NCBI GenBank assembly: GCA_002104905.1
Contig: MCFE01000053.1
Span: 1 to 64,000 of the forward strand
DNA length: 64,000 nucleotides
Direction of reading: 5' to 3'
From: Basidiobolus meristosporus CBS 931.73
Lineage: Eukaryota > Fungi > Basidiobolomycota
Within the stretch, counting starts at the first letter, position 1, and each line of letters begins with the position of its first letter. Under the pieces are notes generated by a model. It saw only the letters and a list, made by a program, of their open reading frames with translations, did not search any database and was not told where the DNA came from. The position numbers and the translations under genes are program-made. Shown here one piece after another: positions 5,068 through 64,000 of the stretch.

Positions 5068-5068
5068 T

Positions 5069-5079: not shown

Positions 5080-5120
5080 AACCTCCGATCTCCAAAAAAC
5101 AAAAACCTCCGTACCTCCCA

Positions 5121-9814: not shown

Positions 9815-9825
9815 GTGTGGGAGTA

Positions 9826-40008: not shown

Positions 40009-40842
40009 GTTGTAGTTGAAATGGGATGGGTCAATGTCAAATTGACTTCGTGTTGATGCTCTGTGGACACATCGTCGTCGCCTCTTATACCTCCACTGAA
40101 TGCCCAGGGGACCCGGATGAGGCCTTTAATTAATTTTGCTAGGGGCCTAGGGCTGGCCTCTTGAATCAACAACATGTAGAGTCCGAGAAGTGCTCCTCGC
40201 GACGTCGGTGAGATGTTTGAATCAATGTTTGTAGCCGAAGACATCTGTTCCTTAAATTATATCATTAATTTGGAACCTGGGTGTGGTGAAGATGCAACTA
40301 GGACCCGATCTATTGTATAAGCACGTTTAAAGGAGGCTTATGCTAGGGTCACCCAACACTTCCACGATTGCGGTAATAACCAACTTCCAATACCGATTTC
40401 AATCATGGACATGTGGTAGCTAGCCGAATTCGGATATTTTTGCAAACAGATCCCTGCTATTGGCGGAAATGCCTTTGATTGTTCTATTCTACCTGACATC
40501 CAGAATCTACCAATAGTGAGGACCAAGGATGGGATACAAGGGAAAATAGGGAAAATAGGGAAATTAAGAGTACGGTAAGTACACCAACACCTATTGGGTA
40601 TATATATATAGTAAACGGTATCAATATTGTAATAAATTGGGAAATTTAAGTTATCCTAATTCAGGTTGGCGACTCCGAGTTGTGTCAAACTATGGGGCTA
40701 ATGGAAAATACCAAAAATCTCCTCAAACTCCTTTACCTCCCTTTCGCCTCTTTACCCTGATTTTTGTCTACCATTTGCTACTTTACCTTCACCCACTTTG
40801 GTGTTCTACCGGTATAGTGTCCCTATCTATAACTATCTCAAA

Positions 40843-41677
40843 ATGACCAACAAATGCAAATCAGTTTGGCAATACTTTGAACGTCTTGAACCTAAAACTA
40901 AGGGCTCTCAGCATCGTGCCAAATGCCGGTATTGCCCACATGAGTTCAATGGCCAACCTGCCCGTATGATAAAGCATCTGCAAAGCCGCTGTTCAGGTTG
41001 TCCCATTGAGGTACGAGAAGCCCTTGCTGCCCAGGAAGATTACTCTACCCCTACAAAGAAGCCTTGCCTCGAATCCGTTCTCCAGCTCACTAATTCTGGT
41101 TCACATCCTCATACACCCATCCTCCAGCAAATTCCTCATTTGGATTCAACTCCGTCCTCCATCGTCTCAGCACCCCTTACTATAAGTACGCCTTCCAACA
41201 TGGCAACCCTACAGACGATGGCAACTGAAAGCAAACACATGAATGCACCGACTATGCATATGTCAAGCTTGAAAAGCAGCAACGACACGTCCATGAACCT
41301 CCATAATCAGATCCATGATCAATTCCATACGCAGATTCGAAGCCAGGATAGCCCCACTGTGAACGAAATAAACGTGTCTCAAGATCGAATCGAAAAGGAG
41401 CTTGTCGACGCTACTATTGCCAGAACCTTTTACACCACAGGAATCCCATTCTCGGTGATAGAAAATCCGGCATTCATGGAGCTACTGCATACTCTGCGGC
41501 CAGACTACACCCCGCCTTCGCGCAAAGAGTTGGCGGCTATATTCGTAGAGCAAGATTTGTGGCTTTGCAAGGAGACCCCAGCAAAGTAAGTGACGCATTT
41601 CAATGCAGGCTGATGGCGATATTAACCATGCGTTTCCTCACCATAGTAGATTGAATAGCAACATGACTCGTAGGTAG
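40843..41677 (+). CDS. BED zinc-finger protein derived from a hAT transposase N-terminus
   Basis: SVWQYF...KCRYC...MIKHLQSRC (BED) and IARTFYTTGIPFSVIENPAFMELLHTLRPDYTPPSRKEL. Predicted intron 41586-41646; the unspliced ORF ends at 41589. Confidence 0.8.
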
Positions 41678-41831
41678 AAAATAAGCATCGCAATCTACCA
41701 AATGTATATTTTCCGGATTTCTTTGGTTTTGTTTATATACCCATTAAACAGATATGGAGGTTATCAAATCAATCTTTATTAGTTTCGTAAAAATATCCTT
41801 ATGTACATGAAATAGTCAACGTCGATGTGAA

Positions 41832-42254
<423 letters not shown>

Positions 42255-42326
42255 TCAGAATAGCGAAGTAGAGGGAAGGGAGCACCCTTTTTATATTCTG
42301 CTCATTTGATGAAAATCGAAATCAAG

Positions 42327-42379
42327 ACGCGACTATCTATCACGCAAAGCGCGTCAATCACTTTCGCGGAGACACGCGA
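42327..42379. promoter_or_regulatory. Cluster of four CGCG cores (MCB/E2F-like) in the H3-SET bidirectional promoter
   Basis: ACGCGA (42327), GCGCGT (42349), TTTCGCGG (42362) and ACGCGA (42374) within 53 bp; function is inferred. Confidence 0.5.
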
Positions 42380-42559
42380 TCCCGTACAATTACCTAGCGC
42401 AACATGCTTCAGTAAAAATAACCCCAATCAATCAAAATTGATCGAATACGTTGTTGGGATATTTACCCAACACACCAAGTCCAGTTTGACTGTTTCATAC
42501 ACACGTGACCCGCCCTATGAATATGTAGAATTGGAAAATGACGAACGAATATTGCTTTC

Positions 42560-43069
42560 ATGGTCGACACAAAGCGTAAGTCACATTTGCAATAATAAAG
42601 ATATATTGGCCACTGAAATATTTGAACCCAAGCACCCTTCAAGGTATCCCAAAGTGACAAGAATATTGCTCGTTCTCTTCGGCTGGTTGCCACTCGAGAA
42701 TTCAAAGAAGGGGACATCATCAGCAAGATTGAGGGAAAGCCCGCTTCTGACATATGTTACCATACTGTCCAAGTTGACGAGGACAAACATATTGAATTGA
42801 CCAATGATTTGACATATTGTAACCATAGCTGCGAACCCACCACTATTCTAGACACCACCCGCATGGTTGTTGTAGCCCTGAAGGATTTGAAGGAGGGAGA
42901 CGAGCTTACATTTTTCTACCCTTCCAGTGAGTGGGATATGGCCGAGTCATTCAACTGTGCCTGTGGCTCCAGTCAATGTATTCATGTGGTGAAGGGGGCC
43001 AAATACACAGCACCAGAGGTGTTGTCAAGATACTTCATCAATGAGCATATTCGAAAGCAGCTTGAATAA
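42560..43069 (+). CDS. Small stand-alone SET-domain protein with post-SET zinc motif (intron 42576-42632)
   Basis: Spliced: MVDTKP PFKVSQ...RLVATREFKEGDII...TYCNHSCEP...ALKDLKEGDELTFFYPSSEW...FNCACGSSQC; about 150 aa. Confidence 0.87.
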
Positions 43070-43490
43070 ATATTTTCATAAATTGGCTTAATCCAGAGGA
43101 CAAGCCCCCACACAGGAAATTCTGCTAGGAATTGTGGGGCCCAATGGTGCGGCCATACGGGGCGAAGGCTTTGGGTGAGTGGAGCAAATGGTGTGGATGA
43201 TATTAATAGTGCTAATGCTGACCAATTTAAGAATGGTGGTCACTAATTTGGTTTTGACATTTGACATTGAAGGCCTGAAATTTTTGATTCCGCTATATCC
43301 CCGCAGTTCTATGCTCCCCCAAAAAAGAAATTTTGGACTCTGGTCAAAAAATTTTGTCACTTTACGCGATAAAGTAGAGGCTTTGTTCACCAGGCCATCT
43401 TGTCCTATACCCCTTTCTCAGGCTCCAGACTCACAGTAACTTGGCTACAGTTTACTGTGTTTGTTTTACTTTTCTCAACTTCTAGTAACC

Positions 43491-45822
43491 ATGGCCACTT
43501 TCTTGCGTTCGTTCTTGCGCGGTGGTAACACCGCTCTCGGTGGGTTTGCTCGCGCCTCCCCCATTTTGAAAGCCGAGGGCCATAACATTATGCGCGCTTC
43601 GGCCTTCAAGTTCCAGACCCGTTGGGCCTCCGACGAAGCCAACTGCCCCAACCCTTCCGAGCTACAGAAGCTCAAGAAAATGAGAAACATTGGTATTTCC
43701 GCCCATATTGATTCCGGAAAGACCACCCTTTCAGAACGTATTCTCTACTATACCGGCCGTATCAAGGACGTCCACGAAGTCCGAGGCAGAGACAACGTTG
43801 GTGCTACCATGGACTGGATGGAGTTGGAGAGAGAGAAGGGTATTACTATCCAATCTGCTGCTACCCATTGCCAGTGGGGAGACAACCAAATCAATATCAT
43901 TGATACCCCTGGTACGTTTTGTGAAGGCTCATGCTCTTTTCCAACACACCTGTTTACCTGTTTCCCTTTTATTAGGTCACGTTGACTTTACTATTGAGGT
44001 CGAGCGTGCTTTGAGAGTTCTCGATGGTGCTGTCCTTGTGCTTTGCGCCGTTAGTGGTGTCCAGAGTCAAACCATCACTGTGGATCGTCAGATGAAGAGA
44101 TACAATGTTCCCCGTATTTCCTTCGTTAACAAGATGGACAGACCAGGCGCAAACCCATTCAGAATCATCGATCAAATCAGAACCAAGCTCAAGCTTCACT
44201 CCGCCGCCCTTCAAATCCCCATCGGTAGCGAGGACTCCTTCTCGGGAGTTGTCGATTTGATCCGCATGAAGGCCATCTATAATGAGGGCGAGAGAGGTGT
44301 CAATGTCGTGGAGAAGGAAATCCCCGAGAATCTCGTGGAGTTGGCTCAGGATAAGCACAACGAGCTTGTTGAATGCTTAGCTGATGTCGATGACGAGATT
44401 GCCGACATCTTCCTGAACGAGGAGAAGCCTACTGCCGAACAACTTACCGATGCTGTTCGTAGAGCCACTATCGCCAGAAAGTTCACCCCCGTCTTGATGG
44501 GTTCTGCCATCAAGAACACTAGTGTGCAAGCTCTTCTTGATGCCGTTTGCGCGTATCTTCCCAACCCTACCGAGGTAGAGAATTATGCCTTGGATCTTCA
44601 CAAGGGTGAGGAGAAGGTTGCTTTGATTCCTTACTCCAACCAGCCATTTGTTGGCCTCGCTTTCAAGCTCGAAGAAGGCAAGTACGGACAGTTGACCTAC
44701 CTCAGAGTCTACCAAGGTTGCTTGAAGAAGGGTGCCTTCTTGACTCACGCCAAGACTGGCAAGAAGATCAAGATGCCTAGATTGGTAAGAATGCACTCCA
44801 ACGAGATGGAGGACGTTGACTACGTCGGCGCTGGTGATATCTGTGCCATGTTTGGTATTGACTGTGCCTCCGGTGATACCTTTACTGATGGTCAATTGGC
44901 TTACTCCATGACCTCCATGTTCGTCCCCGAGCCAGTCATTTCCCTTTCCCTGACCCCCAAGTCCAAGGATACCGCCAACTTCTCCAAGGCTTTGAACCGT
45001 TTCCAGAAGGAAGATCCCACATTCAGAGTCCACGTCGACTCGGAAAGTAAGGAGACCATCATCTCCGGAATGGGCGAGCTCCATCTTGATATTTACGTTG
45101 AGCGTATGAAGCGCGAATACAACGTTGACTGCGTTACCGGCAAACCACGTGTCGCCTTCAGAGAGACCATTACTCAGGCTGCCGACTTCAACTACACCCA
45201 CAAGAAGCAATCTGGAGGTGCTGGTCAGTTCGGTAGAGTTATCGGTCGCATTGAGCCTATGGAGGCCAATGAGGAAGGAGAGAGTGTCGAATTCGTCAAC
45301 GAAGTCGTCGGTGGCAACATTCCATCCAACTTCATCCCTGCCTGCGAAAGAGGATTCAAGGAGGGATTGGAAAAGGGTTTCCTTATTGGTCACCCCGTCA
45401 CTGGTACCAAGATGATCTTGAAGGATGGTCTTGCTCACGCTGTTGATTCCAGTGAATTGGCCTTCAAACTGGCCACTTTCTATGCCTTCCGTGAGGTTTA
45501 CAAGCAAGCCAAGCCCGTTATCATGGAGCCAGTCATGAATGTTGGAATCACCGCACCTGTTGAATTCCAGGGTGCTGTACTTGGCTCCGTTAACAAGCGC
45601 AAGGGAACCATTGTCGATACCGAAGTCCAAGAGGACTACTTCAGTGCCACCTGCGAAGTCTCCCTCAACAACATGTTTGGTTATGCGACCGAGCTTCGCT
45701 CCGCCACCCAAGGCAAGGGTGAGTTCACCATGGAGTACAAGACCCACGCTCCAGTCCTACCCTACGTGCAGGAGGAACTTATTGAGGAATATAGAAAGAA
45801 GAGAGAGGCCGAAAACAAATAG
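43491..45822 (+). CDS. MEF1: Mitochondrial elongation factor G1 (intron 43912-43975)
   Basis: Presequence; [20 protein letters not shown]|[40 protein letters not shown]. Confidence 0.96.
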
Positions 45823-46518
45823 ATTACTCTCGCTCCCCATCCCCATCCCCAATCATAACATCTTTTTCATCGTTTACATCACATACTCAATCTTTATATC
45901 CAAGTTGATGGTCATGGTATTTTCATGTTGCATTTCGGGCGTTCTTAACTTTGTAGCTTTGGTACCTTCGTTTATATTCACGGCTTGCGCATCCATTCAA
46001 TGTATTCATAGAAATAATCATTTTCAAATAAACATCCATTGCGGCAGCCATAACCAATCCTTCCATAGGAACCGAGTGTCTACTTAAGCTTATCATCGTG
46101 GATGCTTGCGTTCTCTTATCAGGCTTGAAATAGGTTCGCGCTGGAAGAGGATTTATTTCAGGAACCCTCTATCATGTCAAGCACAGCCAGTGAGTGTGGT
46201 TGGGCTAATGGATTCTCCGGACTGGAAGGGCCTTTTTTTCGGGTCCTTTCGGATCCAATCGTTTTGGAAGACTGATCATAGGTTAGAATTGCCATAAATG
46301 GTCTTTATCCCGGCGATTGGCTGGTAACTGGTCAAGGCGATGTATAAAAAGGTACTAGTGGAAAGAGGAGAATTCAATGCTGTCATTTGTAAAATCCCTT
46401 CAGGTTCATAGAGTATAATCGTTTCCCTGTCATTCCCTAGAATTTGTCACCTTTCAGTTGGACATATTCTACCCCTTTTTCCTTTCTCTTTTCCGATTTA
46501 TGGTGTGTTAGAGTAATA

Positions 46519-47929
46519 ATGGATGGATACTACCGATCCAATAGTTCATCGACCGTAGGTAGTCAGTTGGAGCATGTGTTGTATTTAAGCGGAGATACGT
46601 CGAACTACCCTTCCCAAGGGTATCCGCAAGAGATCTGTCTGTCTAACGAGTGCGAGCTCGTTCAGAGGCAGGATATCTGCTTTCCAATTGTAGAGCCGAA
46701 AGAGAATAGTCGATTTGATGCCGGAGCGCTAGAAGAATACCTTGGCGCGGGAAAAAAGGCTCACAAGCATGCTAGCATGAACATGAAAGGCTTCTCAATA
46801 CACGAGGCCGAGCCTAATAGCGGATGCCAAGTCACATATTTTTCCCCCAACACGGGAAGTATCAAGGCCAGCACCCTCGCCTCTTTGACCGCGGAGAAGT
46901 TGGGGGTGAAGGAGCTGTTGAACCTCGACCTCTACTGGATCGACTTTCTCAATCCTAGCTATTCGGAATTGAAGTGGATCGGAAAGGTCTTTCACATCCA
47001 TCCGCTCACCATCGAGGACATCCAGGGGGCGGAGAGCCGCGAGAAATACGAATCTTTCCGCAACTACTACTTCGTGAGTTTACAGACGTTCAGCCCCAAC
47101 GGGTACTCCGAGGACGGCTACACCAATTTGGACCACCCAATCAGTGTCTACAACATCGTGATGAAACACTGCATCCTCACCTTCCACTTCGCGCCCATCC
47201 GGCACACCGAGAAAGTGCTGACCAGATATTCCCACCTCAAGGACTACCTGGTTCTTTCCCCGGATTGGATCAACTACGCGCTGATGGATTCCGTGGTGGA
47301 TGATTTCATCCCCATCGCGGAGAACTTGGAGCTCGAGGCGGATTCGATCGACGAGCTGGTCTTCATTCTCAAAGAATCGGAGCAGGCCGATATGCTGCGT
47401 AGGATTGGCAAAGCAAGAAAATCCCTATCCGGACTGCTTGGCATCTTGAAACCCAAGGCGGAAGTGGTCAAGACCGTCATCAAACGTATCGACGCGTTGA
47501 AGTCTGAGGCGAAAAGTGATATCAAGCTGTACCTCGGCGACGTTCAAGGTATTTCCATCCAACTTTGATGCCCCCCAACTTCGGTGTGTTAACCGTCTTC
47601 TCTTACGTAATATAGACCACATCTTGACCATGATTCAAAGTGCTGGGCATTTTGAAACCATCCTGTCACGTGCCCACTCCAATTACTTGGCCCAGATCTC
47701 CATCGAGATCACCCAAGGAAGCAATGCCATGAACGATGTGCTTGGGAAGTTGAGTATCTTGGCTACAGTCTTGGTTCCGATGAGTCTTATCACTGGTATA
47801 TGGGGGATGAACGTACCAGTTCCAGGGGAGAGCTCAACGGGCCTCGGATGGTTTTTCGGGATCGTGGGTTTCATGGTCTTTGGGCTCATCGTTAGTATCT
47901 GCTATTTTGTGAAAGCAAAGGTGATTTGA
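46519..47929 (+). CDS. CorA-family Mg2+ transporter, ALR1/MNR2 type (intron 47549-47615)
   Basis: YWIDF...FHIHPLTIED...REK, WINYALMDSVVD, MLRRIG, two C-terminal TM helices with signature GIWGMN. Confidence 0.92.
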
Positions 47930-48299
47930 TCCGTGCCAAATAATATACAACGCCATATGTATTCACAAACCTCACTCATGTACAGTCCCCGTTGTGTTGG
48001 GATGAACTAGACCAGGAATTCTCCAATAGCTTTGTAATAAACCACTTTAATGCTTCAAATTAGCTTGTTTATTTCTAAGGCAAAGCAACAATGAGCGCTA
48101 CCGTGTTGTAACGATAAGCATAGGGTTGAGATGATTTGAAATGGGTTGATGCACGGAATGGTTTCGTTCCTTGGTGACTTGAGGAGGGGGGGGGGTGTAG
48201 TAGGTGGCTGAACATCCGAAAGACTTTACATCAAAATGTGAAATATACGTGGAAATACTAGCAAACTATATGCAATGATTGGATTGGGCGGGGTGGGTA

Positions 48300-50540
48300 T
48301 TAGTTCCCGTGGGTGTTGAGGTTTTCTTCGATCTTCTTGACTACCTCCCGCGCGGAGTAGGGGATCTTGGTTCCAGGGCCGAAGATGCAGCCCACACCAG
48401 CGTTGTACAGGAAGTCGTAGTCTTGGGTAGGGATGACTCCGCCGCAGAACACAAGCACGTCATTGGCTCCTTGCTTCTTGAGTTCGGCAATCAACTCGGG
48501 AACCAACGTCTTGTGTCCTGCTGCCAGGGAGGATACGCCAACAGCATGAACATCCGAATCAATGGCCTGTCGGGCTACCTCGGCTGGGGTTTGGAACAAT
48601 GGTCCAACGTCAACATCAAATCCGAGATCCGCAAATCCAGATGCGACCACCTTGGCGCCACGGTCATGGCCGTCCTGTCCCATCTTGGCTACAAGGATAC
48701 GGGGGCGACGTCCGTGGTTTTCGCTGAAATGGTCGATCAAGCTGAGAATGCTGGAGACCTCCTCGTGATCTTTATATTCGGATTTGTAAGCGCCAGAAAC
48801 GACTCGAGTGGCTGGCAAATGGCGGCCCCAGATCTTCTCCAAAGCGTCCGAGATTTCGCCTACGGTACATCTGGCACGGGAAGCCTCGATGGAAAGCTCC
48901 AAAAGGTTGCCTTGGCCGGTCTTGGCGCATTCGGTCAAAGCATCAAGACACTGTTGTGCCTTGACTGGGTCTCTGGTGGCCTTCATCTTGTTGATTCTGT
49001 CGATCTGCTTTTGTCTGACCACGGTGTTATCGATGGCCAATACATCGACTGGGTCTTCCTTCTCTAGGCGATACTTGTTGACACCAACGATGGTTTCAAC
49101 CCCAGAGTCGATACGAGCTTGTCTCTTAGCAGCACTTTCTTCGATTCTAAGCTTAGGCATACCAGAGTCGACCGCCTTGGCCATACCACCGAGGCTTTCG
49201 ACTTCATTGATAACCTTCAATGCCTCTTCATAGATTTCATTGGTCAAGCTTTCCATCATGTAAGAGCCGGCCCAAGGATCGGCAACCTTTGGAATACAGG
49301 CTTCCTCTTGGAGAATCAGCTGGGTGTTTCTTGCAATACGTGCACTGAACTCAGTAGGCAGTCCGATGGCCTCATCGAGAGCGTTGGTATGAAGGGATTG
49401 GGTACCACCGAGGGTAGCAGCCATGGCCTCAACCGTGGTACGAATGATGTTGTTGTAAGGATCTTGCTCGGTTAGAGACCAACCAGAGGTCTGACAATGG
49501 GTTCTCAACAGGAGGGATTTGGGGTTGGTGGGGTTGAACTTCTCCTTGAGAAGATTGGCCCACAACCGTCTAGCAGCTCTCATCTTGGCCACCTCCATGT
49601 AGAAGTTCATACCGATCGCCCAGAAGAAGGAAAGTCTGGGGGCGAATTGATCGACCGTCATGCCGGCCTTGATACCAGTTCGGATATACTCAATACCATC
49701 AGCGATGGTGAACGCCAGCTCGAGCACGTTGTTCGCGCCTGCTTCCTGCATATGGTAACCAGAGATGGAAATGGAATTCCATTTGGGCATGTTCTTGGCA
49801 GTGTGGGAGAAGATATCCGCGATGATTTTCATCGACGGCTCAGGTGGGTAGATGAAGGTGTTTCTCACCATGAACTCCTTCAAGATGTCGTTCTGGATGG
49901 TTCCGGCAAGGTCCTTTTGGGTTGCTCCTTGCTCTTCAGCTGCAACCACGTACATACCAAGGATAGGCAATACGGCGCCGTTCATGGTCATGGAGACGGA
50001 CATCTTGTTCAAGGGGATGCCGTCGAATAGAATCTTCATGTCTTCCACACTGTCGATAGCTACGCCGGCCATACCCACGTCACCCGTGACTCTAGGATGG
50101 TCCGAGTCGTAGCCTCTATGGGTGGCCAAATCAAAGGCGACACTAAGACCCTGTTGACCAGCGGCCAAATTTTTACGGTAGAAACGGTTACTTTCTTCGA
50201 CCGTACTGAACCCGGCGTACTGACGAATGGTCCAAGGACGAGCGGTGTACATGGTGGCGTATGGGCCGCGGGTGTAGGGGAACTTCCCCGGAAGCTCATC
50301 TGGAAGGTTTGGTACGTCCGCCTTTGTGTAGACGGGTTTGACGTCGATCCCTTCCGCGGTTTTCCACTTCAGGGCCTCCGCGGGGTCCTTGCCTTTCAGC
50401 TCTTTGGTGGCAAGTTTCACCCAATCCTCAGGGAGTGGGTGCTTGAAAGTTCTGGCTTTGGTCCCAGAGAAGCTTCTTATCGAGCCGAGTATAGGAAGAG
50501 GTCTTTTGATTGCGCTTCTTAGAGCAAAAGTGTAAGTCAT
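48300..50540 (-). CDS. MUT: Adenosylcobalamin-dependent methylmalonyl-CoA mutase, mitochondrial, intronless
   Basis: Presequence; [45 protein letters not shown]12-binding DGHDRG. Confidence 0.97.
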
Positions 50541-51974
50541 TTATGGGGAAACCGGTAGGCTAGTAAAGGTTTGGGAGAAAGAGGGAGTCAAGTGTGGGGT
50601 AATACGTAGGGAACACCTCACTGCAGTGGTGTGGGGATATATATTTATGTGCAAAGCGCGGAGAAGGTTTAGGCAAGTGATACGAAGCTGGGCCAGCTGG
50701 TGGATAGGAATTTAAATAGGGAATGCTAAACTACAGGGAGTGGCTGAATGACCGATGATTTTAATCATCACTAATCCATCCGGTCGCCGCCTGCTTTTGA
50801 AAAGCACGGATTTCGGGCTCGTTGAAATGAATGGGTTTTGCGAATCCACCGATAACGCCATCCAGAAAGGGGCCGATCTGGATAGACTCTGGACTCCAGC
50901 AAGTGAAACTTTTGCCGACTGTTGATTAATGTTGCCATAGTGTGGGTCCGATTGATTCCTCCTTATTAGGCAGGCGAAATGTGGCTTAGGGAGGTTGGTT
51001 GCGACGTCAAGAAGCGAAGGTTGTCTCTAGCGAAGTGGTCTTTGAGGAGCTGATCCGACGGTTCTTGCTCCACCAGATGGATTCCCAAGGCCGTGTGAGT
51101 GTGGGAAAGCTGTTCGGTTGAAATTCACGTCATCCGCCTTCCCTTGCCGCCCTTACCCCCGACCATGAAAATCGCCGCTGACAACTACCCCGGCATCTTC
51201 ATGTTACACAAGGCAGTAGAACATACGCGTGAGAAAAACCGCCGACCTTCAATCAAGCACATATACAATGGCTCATTCTTAAGCTCACATACAATGGCCC
51301 ATTCTAGAGTCGAGATCTGGCCATGGAGCTAAATGTCTCAGACGACCGTTGGTTTCCCGTAAAGTTAATCCGTTGATTCATTAGATAAGGCTTAGGCATT
51401 CGAAGTCTCCGTCAAGCACCTATTGGGCACTAGGTCCTGACTTTTAATTCAAATTCCGATCGACTTCAACTGCCAGTTCGGTTTGTAATACCACCTGTGT
51501 TCAATGACGGGCGGGAGAGTGATTGGTGTGTATGCAGCGTTCAACGGAAAATTGGATTTCGGTGGGAGTTTTCTGTTGAATAGGCCTGCACGGAAGCTTA
51601 GGTGGTTTGGCGAACGTACTTGATATCTAGTGGTTTTTTCCTTGCTGAATGCCATAGCATCGTTCCAGGTGACTGCAAAACATTCGTATCACTTTTGATT
51701 GTTCACATCCTCCGATGTCTTACCTATGATCTATCTGTTGGAAACTAACTCGATCTATGGATTGGCTCTGGATTTCCTTGATTTGATACTTAAATAGCTG
51801 ATTACCACAAAATCGATGATTCCTTGTCACCCAAAACATTCCATATTTTGTGCATTAATCTTGACTGGCCTTGCCCAGCTCATTGCATTGTTCAGGCATT
51901 GAAAGGCAAGTCCAAGGATCTCATCACCTGCAATGAGCTACAGTGTAAAGGTTGGATAAAAGCACTTTAAGAAC

Positions 51975-52193
51975 ATGGCAGAAACAAAAACTGGACACAA
52001 ACTGAAAGGACTACAAAGTGACAATCAAGGGGAGTACTGTTCTAAAGTGTTTGCTAAGTACTGCTCAACCACTGGCATACTGCTACAGACAACTGTTCCT
52101 CATACACCAAAGCAAAATCCTATTCAAAATAATTGTCATGATCCCATCAAAAGGCTGTCACAAATGCCAGTTCTCTCACTTTCCAATCCCTGA
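51975..52193 (+). pseudogene. Ty1/Copia integrase relic
   Basis: LKGLQSDNQGEYCSKVFAKYCSTTGILLQTTVPHTPKQN resembles the SDNGGEY...GI...TPQQN core, then breaks off. Confidence 0.75.
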
Positions 52194-52690
52194 CACTGAA
52201 TCATCTCCTACATTTGGGTACATTGATTGGCTATTGCCTCCTTTTCACCCTCCTCACTTTCTGACTCAACCAATGCTTATACTTCTCATGCATATAAATT
52301 GCTTATTTCTGTTTAATCATCAGTTATAGCTCAATTGTAGACTGTACTGACCTATGCAAGTCCCTTTACCTAACAATAACATTAAGCCTAACCTCACACT
52401 CAACAAGTAACTCCATTAGCATCCACCATTGAAAAAGTGTCTCTGTTGTAATGGTGTTTGCCCATGACTTTGGCAGGAACCTTACCCTATGAAAAATAAT
52501 TTGGTCCAGCAGGTGGATCCAATCTGGATCAGCTGTCATGATTCTGTTTGGAGACTGTCATAATACTAGCAGCTTGGAATCAGTGACCCTCTTGACAATC
52601 TTATGATGGGATCACAACAGTGTTTTGCTAATTTTACTGCCAAATAAAGTTATAAAACTTGACAGGGTTTAATTAGTGCTGTGACAATAA

Positions 52691-52900
52691 TTGGATGGCA
52701 TTGTTGTGGTCTTAATGTGCTCTACAACTATTTTAAATGGATCTAACCGGCCAGTACATCCAATTGCCTTATATGGCAAAAAACTTAACAGTGTTTTGAC
52801 AGCCTCTCAGCAAGTCTCTGATGGCATTATTACTGCAGTATGGCAGCCTACAGCTAGTTCTGTACAATATCACTGTACCAATTTACCAAATGGTATTTCC
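52691..52900 (+). pseudogene. Probable Gypsy RNase H relic
   Basis: GIVVVL...PVHPIALYGKKL resembles the G-A-VL...HPIAFxSKKL motif; surrounding frame is decayed. Confidence 0.45.
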
Positions 52901-54866
52901 TCTTTCTACCTCTCCTTGTGCAATTCATATATTCCATTGTGGAATCACCCCTCTTTATTTGCTCACTCACTACTACCTTTGGTATTCCACATATAGTTCA
53001 AATCAAAAAATACTATGGCCTCCTGCATACTAACCTCTACAAACACACACACCTGCTGTTGTAAAAATTCAAAATTCCACCTAAATATTCACCTAACTTA
53101 GTCACTTAGATCATTGCCTTCAAATCCTAGAGAATACTGACCAAATTCCTTGTTGGGATTTACTTAGAATATTTACCCAGAACATGAAAATTAGATAAGT
53201 CATCCAAACAGCCCCAAACTTTGCACACATGCTCTTGGGAGCTTCCTTAGCCTATTCTACATGTTTGTAATGCTAAGACCATGTAAAAGTATAAATACTA
53301 CTTTTACATCTAATAAATCATCAAGTGAGAACCACATAGTATACTTGTTCTCCCAATCACTTCCAATATCTCCAAGACTCTTACAACACCTGCAGCAATT
53401 GACATACTTCTCTCATCTCAAATTTATGGCTTTATAGTGTGATACTTGCAAAGTTGCCATATGCCTTGTACTGCTGGTAGAATATACATCTTGCAAACAT
53501 AAGCTTGGTTGCCACCACTTCTGCCATTAATACTTCCTGAATATCCACAAAGAACCTTTTGGTATTTAGCCAATATATTAGTTCATGCATTGGTAAAATA
53601 ATAACACATGTAAGTTGATATTTAGCCTGAATTTAGATTTAAAGAATATTTAAAGCAAAACTTTTGTTGAATATTTGTTTTTCATGACAAAAAGAGCTTT
53701 ATGAAATAAAACCTGGATAAAACTAATATCACATCTACAATATGCTTAAAATAAACTAAACTTTTGTCAAATAATCTTTATCTTGTGCAAAAAAGTGTCA
53801 AAAACAAGTCGTCAAAGCAACTTTTGGATAATGGATAAAGCTAATATTACATTTACAATTTTATTTAAAACAAATTAAACTTTTGTCAAATATTAATTGG
53901 CTAGAATTGCAGCTTTTTTCTTGCCCTTCCCTGTCTCAGGCTTGGGTAGACTTTTTTCCCTTTACCATTCTCTTTATTGTTGCCAGGACTTCACTGCTAC
54001 TTTGTCTGAGTGCCTCTTGTATTGAACTACATTTTCTCCTTGATAGATGCTGCTCTGATGCATCTGTTTTGGCCTTCTTGTCCCTTGCTGGCACTCAACT
54101 GGTAATCTGATGCTTTTTCCCCCGCTTATTTTGAGATCTCAGCCCATACTGTGACAGGCTCCTGAGGTAGCCATAGGCTTTTATCACTGCCCTTCACTAC
54201 TACTCTGACTGAGTGCTTTTTAAGTGGAACTACACTTTTCCTTGATATATGTTATGCTAGTGCATCTGTGTCTGCTTGCTTTGTCCTTATTGGGACTCTT
54301 CCAGCTACCTGATGTCTCTTTGATGCTTGTTTGGAGCTTTTGGCCCTGCTTGTAATGAGCTTTTGAAGAAGCTACTGGTTCTTAGCCATTGTACCCTTAT
54401 TCTTCTGCCATTGATAGTTTCTGCTATACTAAAGATGATTTCTTAGCAAACCAAAGCTGGCTCAAAATCTGTTTGCTTGTTTGAATCCCAGATGATGATC
54501 ATGGCACAAGTCAAGCACATTCTGCTTGGCCTTGAGTTCCTGATGTTCCTATCATATGCCAGCCTTAAGGTGTTGGTGTGCTAGATTTCTAACAGCCTCT
54601 TGAATATTGGCCCACTCTTCATCATAGCACTGAACAGCTTCACCTATCTTCAATATGTTTTGATTTTTGGGATTTGGTATAGTTGCTACATTTTCTCCCT
54701 CACATGCTGTGATAGGTTTCTTTGTGGGCTTTATCTTTGAACACTATTGTTATGCTTCAAAGACTGTACAGTGTTCCTCTTCTGTTACACCAGGAAATGG
54801 CTCAATTCTTGGCTGTGACATTTAGCTACTTAAGTTCCTTCTTTGCTGCAAAGATACTGCTTTGTC

Positions 54867-55387
54867 TGTCATGATCACATGACAGCCATGAACACCCATG
54901 CCAAGTTTTGGCTTCCTAGCTCAATTTCTAAGAGATTCCTTCTGGAACCTTCTACCACCTTCCAAAAAGTTCCTGACCATTCCAAACCATTGTTACACAA
55001 TGGAACATTCCATGGAAGCTTTCCATTGTATTTTTCATAGTCCAGTACCATATATGGAAATACCAGGTCACATGACTTAGTCACATGATCAGGTGACCCA
55101 ATCCATTTCCCCATCCTGTCTCAGTGCCGTGTCATCTATGTCATTATCCCCAGCACCATTGCTGTGCCTCACCCCACAACCCCATTAGTATTAGCTAATA
55201 TCTCTTGGCATCAGTATAGCCAAAAAGTATATATAGTCCTATCCCCCCTTAAGTATTCCTCAGTCTGATAAACACAGGTCTTGAATAAACAGCCTTGCCT
55301 TGAATCCTGCCTTGCCTTGATGGTCCACACCTAAGTCCTTTCCTGCTGTGCCTAGCTTTTCCTCCTGCCTTGTGTCTATTCATAACA
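54867..55387 (+). repeat. 5' LTR of element 2
   Basis: Direct repeat of 60248-60768; TATATATA at 55228-55235. Confidence 0.97.
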
Positions 55388-55793
55388 GTTTTATCAGACT
55401 CCCCTGACTTACCTGTGGATCCCTGCCTTCTGCCCAAAGTTTGAAGAAAACTTGTAAAAGGAATACTCACCGTAAGTATCACCCATCATCTTTCCCTAGT
55501 CTTGTCCTATAAAGGCAAAGATACTTTATCTTTGTAAAACTATTGGTCAAAGCTGCATTCACTTTATTACCCTGCTGGTGGAGTTTACAGTTGTTACAGT
55601 ATTGGAAGCTTTAGTACAATACTCTATCAAAGGACGTTGAAACCAGTACCTTCTGAAGTGACGCTAACTTATTTAAGTTGGGGATTGTGGCTCAATAGTT
55701 GTATTCTTGACATACTAGTGGCTTTACAAACCCACAACCTAGTTTAGTATATTCCGGTATTCCTTGCAAGTTCACCCGCCTTCCTCTGCTACC

Positions 55794-56726
55794 ATGTCCA
55801 ACCTAGAGCTGAACTTTGCCCAGCTCATGGCTGCCTTTACCCAACTGCAGCAAGACCATGCAGACCTCAGAAACACTCTTGCTCAGTTCCAGAACCAAAG
55901 TGTCCAGCAAACTAGCCATGTCCCAGTCTACCAAGAACCCAAGTATACTCCTGCTACCAAGTTCAATGGCTCTCAGAATGAATTCCGTGGCTTCATCAAC
56001 ATGGTGAAGAACAACCTTGCACTCCAGCCCAACCGGTACCCCACTGACCAGGCCAAAGTTGGTTTCATCTCCAACCTGCTTACTGGTACAGCTCTCAAGT
56101 GGTTCTCCCCATTAGTGGAGACCAACTCTCCCCTACTCAGAGACTACCAAGCTTTTCTCACAGAAATGGAGCTAACGTTTGGTAATCTTGACCAAGCCAG
56201 AACTGCTGCCAACAAGATCAAGACCCTCAAGCAAGGGAACAAACCAGCATCAGTATATGCCTCAGAATTCCGACAACTCTCCAGTGACCTCAGCTCCTGG
56301 GGTCAAGCAGCCTTGATAAGCCAATTCCAAGATGGCCTCAATGATGAAGTTTGTGATCTGCTACTCACACTCCCAGATCCAGATACATTGGTTGAAGCTA
56401 TGCACCAAGCAATCCGGTGTGATAACAGACTATTCCAGAAGAAGCAAAAGAACCATCAAAGACACATTCCTGTTGCAGTCCCAGCCCCTCCTGCTCCCCA
56501 AGTCACTCCAGAAGATCCTATGCAGATTGATAGTGCCAAATACAAGAAACTATCAAAGAGTGAAAAGTCCAGACGTCAACAAGCCAACCTCTGTCTATAC
56601 TGCGGCCAACCAGGTCACTTTGCCAAGTCCTGCCCCAACAAGAAGTCCAGCTTCAAGCTGATGCAGTCCTCCAGCAACCAACCTGATCCAGATCTGTCGG
56701 GAAACTCCAATGTCCAGTTGCACTGA
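55794..56726 (+). CDS. gag: Gag of element 2 (PEG10/RTL1-like capsid, CCHC knuckle)
   Basis: [13 protein letters not shown]...[55 protein letters not shown]. Confidence 0.93.
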
Positions 56727-56819
56727 CAGGCTTGCAACTGGACCCACCCATGAAAATCCAGCATATCCAAGCATCTTCCTTTGCCACAAAATCTATCCAG
56801 TCCTTGAGAATGCCTGTCA
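56699..56819 (+). other. -1 ribosomal frameshift signal (slippery heptamer plus stem-loop/pseudoknot)
   Basis: G GGA AAC in gag frame at 56699-56705, 6-nt spacer, perfect 11-bp stem (56712-56722/56733-56743). Pol frame is -1 and open from 56687. Confidence 0.88.
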
Positions 56820-59800
56820 AAATCCAGATCCCTGACTCCAGTCCTGTCCCAGCCCTAGCCCTGATTGATTCCGGTGCTTCATCCTGTTTCATTGACCAAG
56901 CCTTTGTCCAGAAGCACTCTATTCCTGTTACCTTAAAATCCTGTCCAGTCCAAGTAGAAGTTATTGATGGAAGATCACTCTCCTCTGGTGCCATTACCCA
57001 TGAAACATGCTTACTCCAGCTGTCCAGTACTGCCCACCAAGAAAGAATCGCCTTCAACATCATCAACTCACCACACTATCCTATTGTGCTTGGAAGCTCA
57101 TGGTTGAGCTACCACAATCCAAGTATTGATTGGAAATCCAAGATCCTGTCATTCACCAGATCCCACCAAGTCAACTCCATGAAATCTCCAGACCCAGATA
57201 ACCGTGAAAAGACGGTTGCCAACAGTTCAACAGCCCAAGATACCTTACCAGCTGAAGGAGCCCCCTCAGCAACTATACCAGCCAAGTACCAAGAGTTTGC
57301 CCATGTCTTTGACAAGAAGAAAGCAGAACTCCTCCCTGACCATCGGCCTTATGACTGCCCTATTGACCTTGAAGATGGAAAAGTCCCTCCATTTGGCCCA
57401 ATATATAACCTCTCCCAGCCGGAGTTGAAAGAACTTCAAGGTTATATTCAAGAAAACCTCCAGAAGGGTTTTATTCAGCACTCCAAATCACCTGCTGGAG
57501 CCCCAATCCTCTTTGTCAAGAAGAAGGATGGCACCCTCAGAATGTGTGTGGACTACCGTGCTTTGAATAAGATCACAGTCAAGAACCGCTACCCCCTGCC
57601 CCTGATCAACACACTGTTGGATCAGCTATCTGCTGCCCAAGTCTTCACCAAGATAGACTTGAGAGGAGCTTACAATCTTGTCAGAATCAAGCCTGGTGAT
57701 GAATGGAAAACTGCCTTTTGCACAAGATATGGTCACTTTGAGTACAAAGTAATGCCATTTGGCCTCACCAATGCCCCTGCTGTGTTTCAACACCTCATGA
57801 ATGACATATTCCGTGAATACCTTGACCATTTTGTGGTAATCTACCTTGATGATATTCTCATATACTCCAAGAGCCAAGATGAACATGATGAACATGTCAA
57901 GAAAGTATTGAGAAAACTAGACTCTGCCGGTCTCTATGCCAAGCTAGAGAAGTGTGAATTTGACCAGAGAGAAGTGGAATTTCTTGGTTATCTCATCAGC
58001 CCTGAGGGAACAAGAATGGACCCAAAGAAAGTTGACTCAGTCCAATCCTGGAAAACTCCAAGCTCAGTCAAGGAAGTACAATCCTTCCTGGGATTTGCCA
58101 ACTTCTATTGCAGGTTCATAGCCAACTACTCCAAGATAGTCACCCCTCTGACAAAGCTTACCCAGAAGAACACACCTTTTGCCTGGAATGAGGAGCAATC
58201 CAGCTCATTCAACCAACTCAAGAAATCTTTCCTGAAGGCCCCCCTGCTTGCCCACCCTGACCTTGAGAAGCAATTCATAGTGGAGACTGATGCTTCTGAT
58301 TTTGCCCTTGGTGCCATACTCTCCCAGTATGATGGGGACAATGTGTTGCACCCCATTGCATTCTACTCTTGGAAGTTTTCCCCTGCAGAGATCAACTATG
58401 ATATCTATGATAAGGAGTTGCTTGCAATCATTGTAGCCTTTGAGCAATGGAGACACTACCTGGACGGTGCAAAACACAAAATCAAAGTCTTCTGTGACCA
58501 TAAGAACCTTGAGTACTTTGCAACTTCCAAAGTACTAAACCGGAGACAAGCCAGATGGTCACTCTTCCTGTCCAGCTTTGACTTTACTATCACCTATAGA
58601 CCTGGTGCAAAACAAGGAAAGCCTGATGCCCTGTCCAGAAAAAAGGAATATGCCCTGGAAGAGGGAGATGATGCCTGTTGGCAAATGGAACACCCATTCC
58701 TGAGCAAGAAACATTTTGAGATTCTTGCCACCCAGTCCTCAAGTCTTGTCATCCCTTCATTCCTAGTAAGGATATCAGAAGCCCAAGCCTCTGATATGAC
58801 TTCCAACACCGTGAAGAAATATCTGGAATCCCCAGTTGGGCCCCCTCCCAAGTTCCCAAACATCCAGAACCTGCATTTGGTAAACAACCTCATCTACCAC
58901 AAGCAGCAGCTCTATGTCCCAGACCTTGCCACCCAGCTAGACATCATTAAGTCTCGGCATGATTCAATGGCTGCAGGCCACTTTGGTACTGCCAAAACCT
59001 TAAATGCTATCAAAAGAGATTTCTGGTGGCCTAGAATGATAACTCTTATCAAAGAGTACATTCTGACTTGTGATATTTGCAACCGTGCAAAACCAGCCAG
59101 ACACCAGCTCTATGGACTTCTTCAGCCCTTGCCTATCCCAGAACACCAATGGAGATCTATATCTATGGACTTCATTACTGACCTCCCTGAGTCATGTGGC
59201 TTCAATGCTATACTTGTAGTGGCTGACCGGCTGACCAAGATGGCTCACTTTATCCCTTGCTGTAAGAACACTGATGCAAAAGAAACTGCTGCTTTAGTCC
59301 TGAAGAATATTTTCCGCCTTCATGGTATCCCCAGTGATATTGTGTCAGATAGAGGCCCACAGTTTGTGTCCAAGTTTTGGAAACACTTCATGAAATACTT
59401 TGGTGTTCAAGTCAAGCTCTCTACTGCTTTCCATCCACAGTCTGATGGCCAGACTGAAAGAATCAACCAGATTCTAGAGCAATACCTCCGGTGCTATATC
59501 AATTACCAGCAAGACAATTGGGTTGATCTACTCCCTGTTGCTGAGTTTGCCTACAACAACTCAAGCCATAGTGCAACCGGTTTTACACCATTCTATGCAA
59601 ACTATGGATTCCACCCTCAGTTTGATATCCAGATTCCAACAAACCCAATGAGCCCACATGCGGCTGAACATGCCCAAGCAATCCAGGACATCCAGAATAC
59701 CCTCAAGGAAGAACTATCCTTAGCTCAGGAAAGCTACAAGAAATTTGCCAATCTAAAACAGCATCCCAGCCCTGATCTTAATGAAGGAGATTTTGTATGG

Positions 59801-60247
59801 CTGCTCAGAAGAAACATCAGCACCAACCGCCCTTGTGACAAATTGGATTTCAAGAAACTTGGTCCTTTCAAGATCAAGAAGAAGCTTAGCCCTATAGTAT
59901 ATCAGCTACAGTTACCAGCAAGTATGAAAATCCATGATACTTTCCATGTGTTCCTCCTGGAGCCGTATTGTAGGAACACCTTGCCAAACCGGCAAGAAGC
60001 AAAGCCCCAAGCTATCCAGGTTGACCAACATCAAGAATTTGAAGTTAAACAGATTCTAGACTCCAAGTATATCCGGTCAAAGCTGTACTACTTAGTAGAC
60101 TGGATTGGTTATGGCCCAAGTGACCAAACATGGGAACCAGCTACACATCTCACTAATTGTCAAGAACTAGTTACCCAGTTCCACCAACAATATCCTGCAA
60201 AACCTGCCCCAAAGGGAAACAGAGCTTTGCCTGGAAGAGGAGAATAG
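56732..60247 (+). CDS. pol: Pol of element 2 (protease, RT, RNase H, integrase, chromodomain); expressed by frameshift
   Basis: [23 protein letters not shown]...CDIC, SMDFI, GPF; chromodomain EFEVKQILD...[17 protein letters not shown]. Confidence 0.96.
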
Positions 60248-60768
60248 TGTCATGATCACATGACAGCCATGAACACCCATGCCAAGTTTTGGCTTCCTAG
60301 CTCAATTTCTAAGAGATTCCTTCTGGAACCTTCTACCACCTTCCAGAAAGTTCCTGACCATTCCAAACCATTGTTACACAATGGAACATTCCATGGAAGC
60401 TTTCCATCGTATTTTTCATAGTCCAGTACCATATATGGAAATACCAGGTCACATGACTTAGTCACATGATCAGGTGACCCAATCCATTTCCCCATCCTGT
60501 CTCAGTGCTGTGTCATCTATGTCATTATCCCCAGCACCATTGCTGTGCCTCACCCCACAACCCCATTAGTATTAGCTAATATCTCTTGGCATCAGTATAG
60601 CCAAAAAGTATATATAGTCCTATCCCCCCTTAAGTATTCCTCAGTCTGATAAACACTGGTCTTGAATAAACAGCCTTGCCTTGAATCCTGCCTTGCCTTG
60701 ATGGTCCACACCTAAGTCCTTTCCTGCCGTGCCTAGCTTTTCCTCCTGCCTTGTGTCTATTCATAACA
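60248..60768 (+). repeat. 3' LTR of element 2
   Basis: Matches the 5' LTR at a constant 5381-bp offset. Confidence 0.97.
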
Positions 60769-61699
60769 TTGTCTACCTATGATGTTGATTGCTCTATACC
60801 ATTAATCTGCTCATCCTGTTTCTGGACTATCTCCCAATGTCTCTGGGCAATTGCATCTATCCTATCAGCCACTGCACCTAGTTGCCTCCTTAATGCTTTG
60901 GTATAAGCTGACAACAACTCGATAATATGGGTGGTGGTCTTCAACTGAAGGTACTTGTTTTGCTACATTCTCATCTGCCTTGGCATTGTGGTCAGCTTGC
61001 AGCTCCACAGAGACTCCCAATTACCTACCTGACTGAGAGCCTGAGGTGTCTGCATTATTACCCTCAGTGGGCACACTGTCCACAAGGCCTTTTTTGGTTC
61101 TAGCCCTGCTTGTTGCACTAAATGGCAAAGCAAGCTGTGGTCCAACCATTTGTCTGCTGCTGTCAGTAGGGGGATTTGCTTGGGAATCAGACAACTTTGC
61201 TTTATTTTTTGGTGGCATATATATGAAAGTGAGACAAACCCAAGGAGAAATGGTGTGTCATACACATGTGTATTGGGTGTCACGACTTTATTTATAATGT
61301 TTACTATGGCAGGTCATCATTGAATCTTACATTTATGTAGGCACAATGTCTCAAGTACAAGGCTGTCTTAAATTCACATGAGTATTGACAGAAAAATGAT
61401 GTAATAGCATTATGTTGTGGAGTGTCAAACTGTTTGCCCCATGGACAAGACTACTTTGATGCAACATTGTAAGAGAAGAGAAAAAAGACCATGTGGCAAT
61501 TGTAATAAGCCTCTCAGCCATGAACCACATAGAAAGTAAAGGAAATATTACAAGCATCACACACAGCATTTTACCACACAAGTCATATTTGACCATTCAT
61601 CAGTTACTACTGTACCAACAGTATCTTGCAACACACTTGATACTTCTATAATAGCACCCAGCTGTACTTGTCATTTTGCTCAAGCTGAGTCAGGTGAGC

Positions 61700-63760
61700 T
61701 TTTGACAACTTTAGGCTCACACCAGCCATTGGAATATGGTATGCAAAGTGATAGCTATGAAGTAGCAGGCTTCCTGATGGATTGTGAGCCTATCTCTCCT
61801 TACAATAGTACCTTGCATAAGCATGGCAAAGTTGCATTATGCTTTGAGACAACACTGGTAGAAGTAAATGCCAAGAATACTTTATGGAGTCAAGTGAGCC
61901 CAGTAATCCATCTGCTGGTGAATGCTGTGATGTGGTGGCCAGAGAAGTGGCACATTTTGGCTAATATCAGTAATGGGGGCTTTGAGGATTTGCTACTGCT
62001 TCTTGCCTCAGTCATCCCAGGATGCAACTTACCATGTACATGGTATAAATAGACAACTGGCATGCAGCTGGCAACATATGACCCAGAGACCAACCTGATA
62101 CATGCATGTATTACAGTTGCATGACATTCTCATCAAAAAATACCACCATCTCAAGGTGTCCAATTTGTCAGGAATCCACTACCATTGGGGGAAAACAATG
62201 TTCACACTCTAGATATATTCTGGTAATACCCTGCATAAAGAGGCTTATCCAGTCCAATAAGTATTGTGAAGCTATAAAGTACTGCACTCAGTATCAAGCA
62301 AGTGCTAACACATCCCATATATTTGATTGCAAACATTACAAGCAGCTTACAAGCATTGGCTACTTTGAAGGTATGTATGACCTTGCCTTTGCCTTGGCAC
62401 TTGATAGATTCTCATCAAACAAGTTCTCTACCAGCAAATCCTGCTTGCCACTAGTTATCATCAACCTGAATCTGTCACCTATCTCAAGGTATCAGAGCAG
62501 AAATTTGATGGTAGTCTCACTGGTATCAGGACCTATATCACCATCCAACCTTGACAGCTACCTGTCTCCCTTGCCGGATGAAAGTTGCATACTTTTCAGC
62601 AGGATAACAGTAAGTGGCCATCATGTCAAAGCACATATTGTATCTGCATTGGAGATACCCCAGCCATTGGCAAGATAGCCAGCTTTGCTAGGCACAATGG
62701 AAAGTGTTGCTGTCAATATGTAAGATCAAGAAGACTTACTCCTCAACTCACACACATTATTATCACCCCAACACCAACACTAAGGTCATCATCTTCCTCC
62801 AGAGAGAACATACAGAAGTAAGCATGCAATTGCAGCAAAGTTGGCAAGCTTAAGCCATTGGCTGGAATATGGAATTAATCAGAGACCAGAGATACTTAAG
62901 ATTGAGGGTATCTGTTGGAGCAAAAGCTTTCCACTGGGAGCAATGCATTTGCTTTTCAACAATATCCCTATACTGATGACCAGGTTGTATATGAGGCATT
63001 CCAAGCTAAATGAGCCCTCTGAGATAGAGGAAAAAATTGAAAGAATTGGCAAGATATTACAGAGTATCTCCTACCATAAGTACTTCTCATAGGCTTCAAT
63101 CAACATTCATATGCATATGCTGCAGTACAAGTGGAAGGACCAGATGAACTGAATATGTACTTATGCAAGTGGCCTTCTGAAGCCATTTTTACCAAGGGTA
63201 TATTGGAAGCATTGGGAGTAATATGTGGACATTGTAGGAATATTTATCCAGAAGCTGATCACCAATGCAAACTTGCTGCTTCTACAGCGTTTGTGCAAAG
63301 AGTTTGTAATGAGATTTGAGCAGCTATACCACAAATATAAATCTGAAGACATAGATCTCTACCACTACTGTATCCATTTTCTACTCCATCTTACCTGGTG
63401 TGTGCAGAATATTAGGCATTGCTTCACCTTTTGGGGGTTTCCTATGGAGTGGATATGTGGGGATATAGGAAGACAAGTCAAGTTGCAGGTACTGCTCTAT
63501 CCTAGTCTCATTAGGTATAATACCTTCAAGTCCATCATGGATATGATGAGTTGGCACATGGATGACAGCAAGGAAGAGTTGGAAAAAACTGAAGTCAGAT
63601 GTGCACATAAAAACACCTATGCTGATGGCATTAAGAAGCTAAGCAGCCCCCATGCAAGGGTAATCAGTGTTGTGCATCAAAACCTAAAACTTAGCAAATT
63701 TCACTCCATTAGAAAATCTAGTACCCCAACTGCTTTTCCCAAGCCCACACATAAGTAATC
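61700..63760 (+). pseudogene. Transposase_21 (CACTA-type) pseudogene
   Basis: HIFDCKHY...DLAFALALD, IINLNLSPISRY, GPISPSNLDSYLSPL, GDTPAIGK...HNGKCCC, AMHLLFNN, HFLLHL...WGFPME, spread over frameshifts and stops. Confidence 0.8.
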
Positions 63761-64000
63761 CTTGTTATGGTCTATTTTATCACTTCTCAGAATATTTTTT
63801 TAGCTGTCACTCTTCATCAATATTTGTGTGGTGTCTATGTCCTCAACTGACCTGCTAAGCCTTTCCAAGTGATTAGACTTCTGAGATCTATCCTACCACT
63901 TTGCAGTTGCCAAGACATCAGCTGATTAATGACACTATGGTGGTGTATAGGTCCAAGGGAGAGATATGTCCAACACTTCTCAAGTGTTTTGTGTGTGGGG

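Follow-up and report, generated by a model that had tools for sequence, protein, structure and literature searches.

Transposon-confined CpG depletion with relative sparing of CCG/CGG sites in a 64-kb stretch of Basidiobolus meristosporus DNA

Introduction

The first 64,000 nucleotides of contig MCFE01000053.1 from Basidiobolus meristosporus CBS 931.73 (hereafter, the window) end in a 12.2-kb block, 51815-64000, from which the CpG dinucleotide has nearly vanished. How did this DNA lose its CpGs, and why do the few survivors so often follow a C or precede a G? The block is a transposon nest, in which a young, intact Ty3/gypsy chromovirus (element 2) lies within older remnants; a second gypsy element (element 1) is located at 4758-10135. 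CpG loss in the window is confined to transposons, and survival within them depends on the neighboring bases, with CCG and CGG sites spared in relative terms and CCGG spared most. We consider transposon-directed CpG methylation, followed by flank-dependent C-to-T decay, the probable cause, judging from base composition and the published gene inventory of the organism.

CpG depletion across the window

CpG observed/expected (O/E) ratios in 2-kb bins are 0.67-0.97 for host DNA, against 0.02-0.16 for the bins spanning 52001-64000, where TpG (O/E 1.44-1.68) and CpA (O/E 1.15-1.47) are abundant. The entire block contains 47 CpGs. The bins at 6001-10000, inside element 1, show the same pattern, with CpG O/E of 0.01-0.18 and TpG and CpA also raised. 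The first-pass annotation of this sequence had reported that CpG nearly disappears after ~51814 for 12 kb while TpG and CpA persist, and that the loss is restricted to transposons; both statements are borne out. Host genes retain their CpGs, and transposons of unlike types (two gypsy families, an integrase-core fragment and a tnp2 remnant) are all CpG-poor.

The transition is abrupt. In 200-bp bins, host DNA at 50541-51814 has CpG O/E of 0.68-1.12, and the step at 51814/51815 runs from 0.93 and 0.68 to four successive bins of 0. Normal CpG spacing ends with the CpG at 51814, and none follows until 52748. The features involved are listed here (LTR, long terminal repeat; TSD, target-site duplication; ORF, open reading frame), with the basis for each in parentheses.

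51815-54861, plus strand: older decayed transposon DNA, 3 CpGs in 3 kb (CpG list, in-frame stops)
51975-52193, plus strand: truncated integrase-core (rve) fragment (Pfam E=1.3e-4, below the Pfam cut-off; in-frame stops upstream)
54862-54866, no strand: left TSD of element 2, TTGTC (flank comparison)
54867-55387, plus strand: 5' LTR of element 2, 521 bp, TG...CA, 1 CpG (LTR alignment)
55764-56726, plus strand: gag of element 2 (Retrotrans_gag, Ty3_capsid, zf-CCHC), intact ORF (Pfam)
56732-60247, plus strand: pol of element 2 (PR-RT-RNaseH-INT-chromodomain), intact 1171-aa ORF (Pfam)
60248-60768, plus strand: 3' LTR of element 2, 2 CpGs (LTR alignment)
60769-60773, no strand: right TSD of element 2, TTGTC (flank comparison)
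60774-64000, plus strand: older CpG-poor transposon DNA resumes, 4 CpGs in 3.2 kb, and continues past the window end (CpG list)
62106-62678, plus strand: broken tnp2-type transposase remnant, Transposase_21 (Pfam)
4758-10135, plus strand: element 1, a young Ty3/gypsy element that lacks a chromodomain (LTRs, TSD, Pfam)
50541-51814, no strand: host intergenic DNA with normal CpG, upstream of a methylmalonyl-CoA mutase gene (CpG bins, synteny)

Element 2 (54867-60768) has every component expected of a Ty3/gypsy chromovirus: LTRs, a 5-bp TSD, gag, PR-RT-RH-INT and a C-terminal chromodomain. Its pol gene carries the majority of the surviving CpGs.

Sequence context of the surviving CpGs

The transposon set comprises 50 CpGs from the nest and the body of element 1, and a CpG is called flanked if it has a 5' C or a 3' G. 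By this definition, 39 of the 50 transposon CpGs are flanked, compared with 865 of 1974 (44%) in host DNA (Fisher p=1.8e-6). CCGG accounts for 15/50 (30%) of transposon CpGs and 4.6% of host CpGs, a 6.6-fold enrichment. Within element 2, counted over 54867-60769, 34 of 40 CpGs are flanked, including 30 of the 33 in ORFs, so the earlier estimate of ~31 in ~34 was about right. For element 1, the estimate of 8 in 11 gave the correct number of flanked sites and a wrong total, as its ORFs contain 12 CpGs.

The bias is graded. The fraction CG/(CG+TG+CA) rises from 0.0075 with no flank to 0.023 with one and 0.077 with two in transposons, and shows no such effect in the host (0.236, 0.235 and 0.194). 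Relative to unflanked sites, the odds ratio is 3.1 for sites with one flank and 11 (p=1.7e-8) for those with two. Relative to the host, CCGG is depleted ~2.5-fold, one-flank sites ~10-fold and no-flank sites ~30-fold. When grouped by the 5' base alone, raw xCG/(xCG+xTG) ratios in transposons are 0.012 for T, 0.022 for G, 0.036 for A and 0.077 for C; expressed relative to the host, the ratio is 0.057 for 5' G and 0.18 for 5' C. GCGC is found at 0/50 transposon CpGs versus 4.5% of host CpGs. A per-strand additive model of survival fits these data: ln survival relative to the host is -0.71 for CCGG, -2.4 for CCGH and -3.5 for DCGH (H, not G; D, not C), with the midpoint of the two outer values predicting -2.1 for CCGH.

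The sparing of CCG/CGG is relative, not absolute. A specificity for (A/G/T)CG(A/C/T) had been proposed from the sequence, and the underlying bias is indeed strong. The exclusiveness implied by that motif does not stand, because CCGG is itself depleted ~2.5-fold and CCGT has decayed in the LTRs of element 2, where it accounts for two of three decayed CpGs. Outside transposon ORFs, 7 of 14 CpGs are flanked, as in the host, and CCGG is enriched (3/61 vs 7/765, p=0.03).

We also note that 13 of the 15 surviving transposon CCGG sites read ACCGG/CCGGT, with T as the next base in 9/15 versus 22% in host and decayed forms. A longer spared motif around CCGG is possible; this is a post hoc lead only.

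Control for codon constraint

Most of these CpGs are in coding sequence, and the flank bias must be separated from codon usage. In the four transposon ORFs, codons with a final pyrimidine (NNY) end in C 66-68% of the time before A, C or T, and in 11/361 cases (3%) before G; in host ORFs, 46% of NNY-G junctions have C. The C/T odds at synonymous NNY-G junctions of the intact transposon ORFs are thus shifted 65-fold. The same four ORFs contain 10 NCG codons versus 255 NCA, and specify arginine with 105 AGR versus 24 CGN codons. CpG has been lost at virtually every silent position, as expected of long mutation pressure filtered by functional selection.

The bias among survivors persists under this control, which had been set beforehand as the test that could refute it. 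Pooled silent-site retention is 4/333 (1.2%) with no flank, 11/244 (4.5%) with one and 6/49 (12%) with two (p=5e-4). C is kept at 6/61 NNY-GG junctions versus 5/300 NNY-GH junctions (p=0.004), NCG at 7/89 before G versus 3/176 otherwise (p=0.03), and NCY-GGN junctions hold C in 4/13. The preceding bases T, A and G behave alike at silent sites (2/119, 2/102 and 1/42, respectively), and C is the outlier. Junctions of the form xxC-GA, xxC-GC and xxC-GT, described as essentially absent, are rare, but five exist.

Arginine codons provide a second view, since both flanks of CGN are silent positions. Of 19 CGN codons in element 2, 16 follow a C (baseline 41%, p=2e-4), and 9 are CGG (third-base G baseline 19%, p=0.005). 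No CCG/CGG bias is seen in six related gypsy elements from other organisms. One of these six, a metagenome gypsy sequence (ENA ERZ27260071, positions 1-3738) that is 64% identical to element 2 in pol, serves as a negative control: it is depleted (CpG O/E 0.23) yet unbiased, with values of 0.057, 0.068 and 0.029 for zero, one and two flanks.

Insertion edge and ongoing decay

The sharp border had been taken as a sign of erasure in place, and this interpretation fails. Element 2 is young (5/521 LTR differences), its reading frames are intact and it is CpG-poor throughout, which indicates that its CpG poverty was inherited from its family and did not arise here. The step at 51815 coincides with one edge of a truncated retroelement remnant; it marks where DNA that was CpG-poor beforehand had been inserted, and is not an erasure boundary.

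Decay has nevertheless gone on after insertion, as shown by LTR differences and by polymorphism among copies. Three of the five LTR differences are CG/TG, at 55027, 55128 and 55347. Every CpG position of the LTRs (3/3) therefore differs as CG/TG, compared with 2 of 515 other positions (hypergeometric p ~4e-7). In two public runs of the organism, element 2 matches 4764 and 5370 contig pieces; 2267 of the 4764, and about half overall, are at least 99% identical to it. Given this copy number and near-identity, the family is very abundant and young. A word search with the pol protein found a best relative at ~64% identity and none from Basidiobolus.

Transitions account for 72 of 108 variable places among the family copies. 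At 54909-54910, the window copy reads TG and the others CA; a single CpG can decay to either. Among the variants listed (40 of 238), the no-flank CpGs at 55635, 55662 and 56176 rank with the best-supported sites and CCGG sites are not represented, which is suggestive at most. Across the family copies (40 of 238 variants listed), places with T in the window copy and C in the others (25) outnumber A-versus-G places (8), a strand asymmetry; there are 19 C>T and 20 G>A places, close to balance.

Element 1

Element 1 adjoins a host cyclin-like gene. It has intact ORFs, a GAAT TSD and 310-bp LTRs (4758-5067 and 9826-10135) that match each other exactly. The body at 5720-9307 contains 3 CpGs (O/E 0.02). 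CpG is plentiful (O/E 0.7-1.2) in the LTRs, the leader and the final ~500 bp of pol, and the element looks like a promoter-centered CpG island on a CpG-free coding body. The leader includes a 20-bp tandem repeat at 5075-5322 with TCCGAT in most units. Flanked sites make up 6/13 of the LTR CpGs, a host-like proportion. An exact look-up of the pol sequence returned no match, and the word search gave at most 47% identity at full length, with no hit from Basidiobolus.

Methylation with flank-dependent decay as the probable cause

We infer CpG methylation as the cause of the depletion, and suggest the following course of events. Transposon CpGs would be methylated by a DNMT1/UHRF1-type system, possibly with Dim2-like enzymes, and the resulting 5-methylcytosine (5mC) would then decay to thymine. 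Over a long time, transposon families would shed their CpGs through C-to-T transitions, yielding TpG or CpA. Active lineages must keep their proteins, so losses would pile up at silent positions and arginine would be recoded to AGR; new copies would insert already CpG-poor, producing a step-like border at the insertion edge. Loss would be several-fold slower for a cytosine that follows C (CCG on either strand) and slowest for CCGG, where both strands are protected. What remained would be mostly Arg CGN codons with silent C and G flanks, plus a few silent CCGG sites. The flank dependence itself may reside in methyl transfer, deamination or T:G repair.

Candidate enzymes for such a process are on record. 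B. meristosporus is listed with DNMT1 (ORX99839), two Dim2-like proteins (ORX98566 and ORX84408), UHRF1 (ORX90637) and HELLS (PMC10538959, Figure 1 source data). The same table has no DNMT3, DNMT5 or DNMT4/RID entry for the species and leaves its 5mC status blank (PMC10538959). No methyltransferase gene is found within the 64-kb window. CpG methylation and deamination are favored over classical repeat-induced point mutation (RIP) by the gene table, by the excess of CpA and by the persistence of intact, near-identical copies in their thousands.

Several points weigh against this explanation. The silent-site counts are small (21 CpGs), and most of the flank signal comes from the ORFs of one element, element 2. 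Outside the transposon ORFs, a single flank confers no protection (4/495 vs 7/765). At the junctions between third and first codon positions, the 3' G effect is at least as large as the 5' C effect, which a strict per-strand model does not predict. The CpG-rich LTRs of element 1 demand an extra assumption, either selection or protection from methylation. No Basidiobolus methylation data were found in the literature searched. Finally, mouse DNMT1 prefers CCG and disfavors GCG (PMC7381644), the opposite of what would be expected if more methylation meant more decay. The flank preferences of DNMT1-family enzymes had been cited as background, and on this evidence they do not by themselves predict that CCG is spared. 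Three routes to the flank dependence are possibilities: the fungal enzyme differs from that of the mouse, the enzyme induces mutation at poor flanks, or repair depends on the flanks.

If the flank dependence extends genome-wide, then the spectrum of surviving CpGs records, over evolutionary time, which sequences a fungal CpG methylation/mutation system prefers, and 5mC levels or C-to-T rates are predicted to fall in the order DCGH > CCGH > CCGG. Active transposon families would be seen to adapt by purging CpG from silent sites and keeping Arg CGN codons only in low-risk flanks.

Alternative explanations

An active, RIP-like process, in which a deaminase or a DNMT1/Dim2-type mutator hypermutates repeats at DCG sites in place of passive decay, in analogy to TpCpG hypermutation in Pucciniomycotina, is unlikely. 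The depletion far exceeds that of vertebrate genomes, with silent-site CpG retention of 3% versus 67% expected, and all three LTR CpG positions have been struck at 1% LTR divergence. TCG is the most depleted context in raw counts (0.012), recalling the pattern of Horns et al. 2012 (PMC3318451), and CpGs survive in the order C>A>G, opposite to the mouse DNMT1 preference, which would fit enzyme-induced deamination at kinetically poor flanks. However, RID/DNMT4 is not listed for B. meristosporus (PMC10538959), and the 2267 pieces at least 99% alike, together with the intact ORFs, indicate that duplicates are not heavily mutated upon duplication. The silent-site data also seem to depart from the Pucciniomycotina pattern, since T, A and G at -1 are alike, C is the outlier and there is an additional 3' effect.

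It is rather doubtful that a methyltransferase, DNMT1 or Dim2-like, is itself the mutator, with deamination inversely tied to methylation efficiency at each flank. Such an enzyme would methylate CCG and CCGG, the substrates that mammalian DNMT1 handles best, cleanly and spare them, and poor flanks such as GCG and TCG would be deaminated. If so, an early-diverging fungus would possess a RID-independent RIP-like system, to which transposons have adapted by purging CpG and retaining only the Arg codons with CCG/CGG flanks.

Alternatively, methylation and deamination could be neutral to the flanks, with T:G mismatches repaired better at CCGG and CCG, so that fewer mutations are fixed at these sites; a glycosylase of the MBD4/TDG type or an endonuclease resembling Vsr would be examples of such a repair enzyme. 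This would account for the relative sparing and its peak at the palindrome CCGG without an unusual methyltransferase, and is compatible with the DNMT1 preference for CCG; the tentative motif ACCGG/CCGGT (13/15) also looks more like the mark of a sequence-specific protein than a neighbor effect. Nonetheless, we regard it as improbable: no such context-specific repair in eukaryotes was found in the literature searched, and the host has no CCGG excess (0.194 vs 0.236), though host CpGs may be unmethylated.

The position of 30/39 flanked survivors in element 2 ORFs, the C-rich coding strand (GC skew ~-0.2, with 67% of Y-ending codons ending in C) and the host-like 7/14 outside ORFs could suggest that the bias reflects coding constraint, codon usage or chance in a single element. 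This is very improbable. The bias persists where the change is strictly synonymous and T or A serves as the matched alternative, and the flanks of Arg CGN codons lie above the third-base baselines of element 2 itself (16/19 vs 41%; 9/19 vs 19%). CCGG is enriched outside ORFs too (3/61 vs 7/765, p=0.03), and the six gypsy coding sequences from other organisms are unbiased.

Other causes can be set aside more briefly. Duplex stability, whereby G:C neighbors slow deamination, is ruled out, as 5' G is not protective and GCGC stands at 0/50 versus 4.5% in the host. Retroelement-specific causes, such as cDNA editing or RNA CpG sensing, are unlikely because a DNA-transposon remnant and decayed fragments are equally depleted, and because the main product is TpG rather than CpA. 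A horizontal origin of the CpG-poor DNA is also unlikely, given that depletion is common to unrelated transposon types and decay between LTRs is ongoing.

Host sequence at the border

The host gene nearest the nest also points to the genus of the organism.

48300-50540, minus strand: methylmalonyl-CoA mutase, intronless ORF (93% protein identity to B. ranarum)

After B. ranarum, the matches to this ORF are other early-diverging fungi. The orthologous B. ranarum contig is collinear with 40733-50896 of the window at 73-83% DNA identity, beyond which similarity ends. The mutase protein and this synteny place the host in Basidiobolus, as a species distinct from that B. ranarum strain, in agreement with the first-pass assignment to an early-diverging fungus. 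Neither a transposon nest nor a CpG-poor stretch was found on the B. ranarum contig, which is usable solely for placing the border. Two genes upstream of the B. ranarum mutase, at 1772-3298 and 4524-6560 of that contig, have no counterpart in the window, consistent with a transposon nest separating them from the mutase here. Elsewhere in the window, direct-repeat arrays in a 30-nt register occupy 37987-38937, within a long minus-strand ORF (37933-40008).

Comparison with known systems

CpG decay of transposons in the presence of DNMT1-class enzymes is already known, and the sparing of CCG/CGG with a peak at CCGG differs from the cases described. The closest parallel is the CpG-signature decay reported for fungi with DNMT1/Masc2-type enzymes, namely Tuber, Microbotryum and rusts (Amselem et al. 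2015, PMC4352252). As in those fungi, CpG-to-TpG change in Basidiobolus is restricted to transposons, DNMT1-class genes are reported, no RID is listed and host genes are spared. Unlike them, Basidiobolus shows a much deeper depletion (O/E 0.02-0.16) that affects intact, high-copy coding elements and depends on both flanks. For Basidiobolus, a zoopagomycete, the literature searched yielded neither a methylome nor a spectrum of transposon mutations, and nothing turned up on flank-specific CpG decay in early fungi; reviews describe zoopagomycetes as low in 5mC and high in N6-methyladenine (6mA).

Comparison with Neurospora-type RIP reveals a shared feature, repeat-associated C-to-T mutation in a fungus, and clear differences. 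The Basidiobolus target is CpG and not CpA, which is over-represented (O/E 1.15-1.47); no RID is listed, and duplicates are intact and near-identical, with gag and pol whole in both elements.

Context-dependent hypermutation of repeats at TpCpG in Pucciniomycotina was reportedly described by Hood in 2005. It is documented by Horns et al. 2012 (PMC3318451). There, as here, the trinucleotide context shapes CpG-directed C-to-T change in transposons, and TCG is the most depleted context in the Basidiobolus raw counts; at silent sites, T, A and G at -1 are alike. The Pucciniomycotina pattern is an enhancement at T versus V (A, C or G) in the -1 position; Basidiobolus instead spares sites with C at -1 or G at +1, most strongly CCGG.

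Flanking preferences of this magnitude have precedent among the enzymes themselves. DNMT1 activity varies up to ~100-fold among NNCGNN flanks and shapes genomic methylation (Adam et al. 2020, PMC7381644), and TCCGTA ranks 2 of 256 for the mouse enzyme (PMC7381644). If methylation drives decay, the mouse DNMT1 preference is the inverse of the order in which CpGs survive in the Basidiobolus transposons (PMC7381644).

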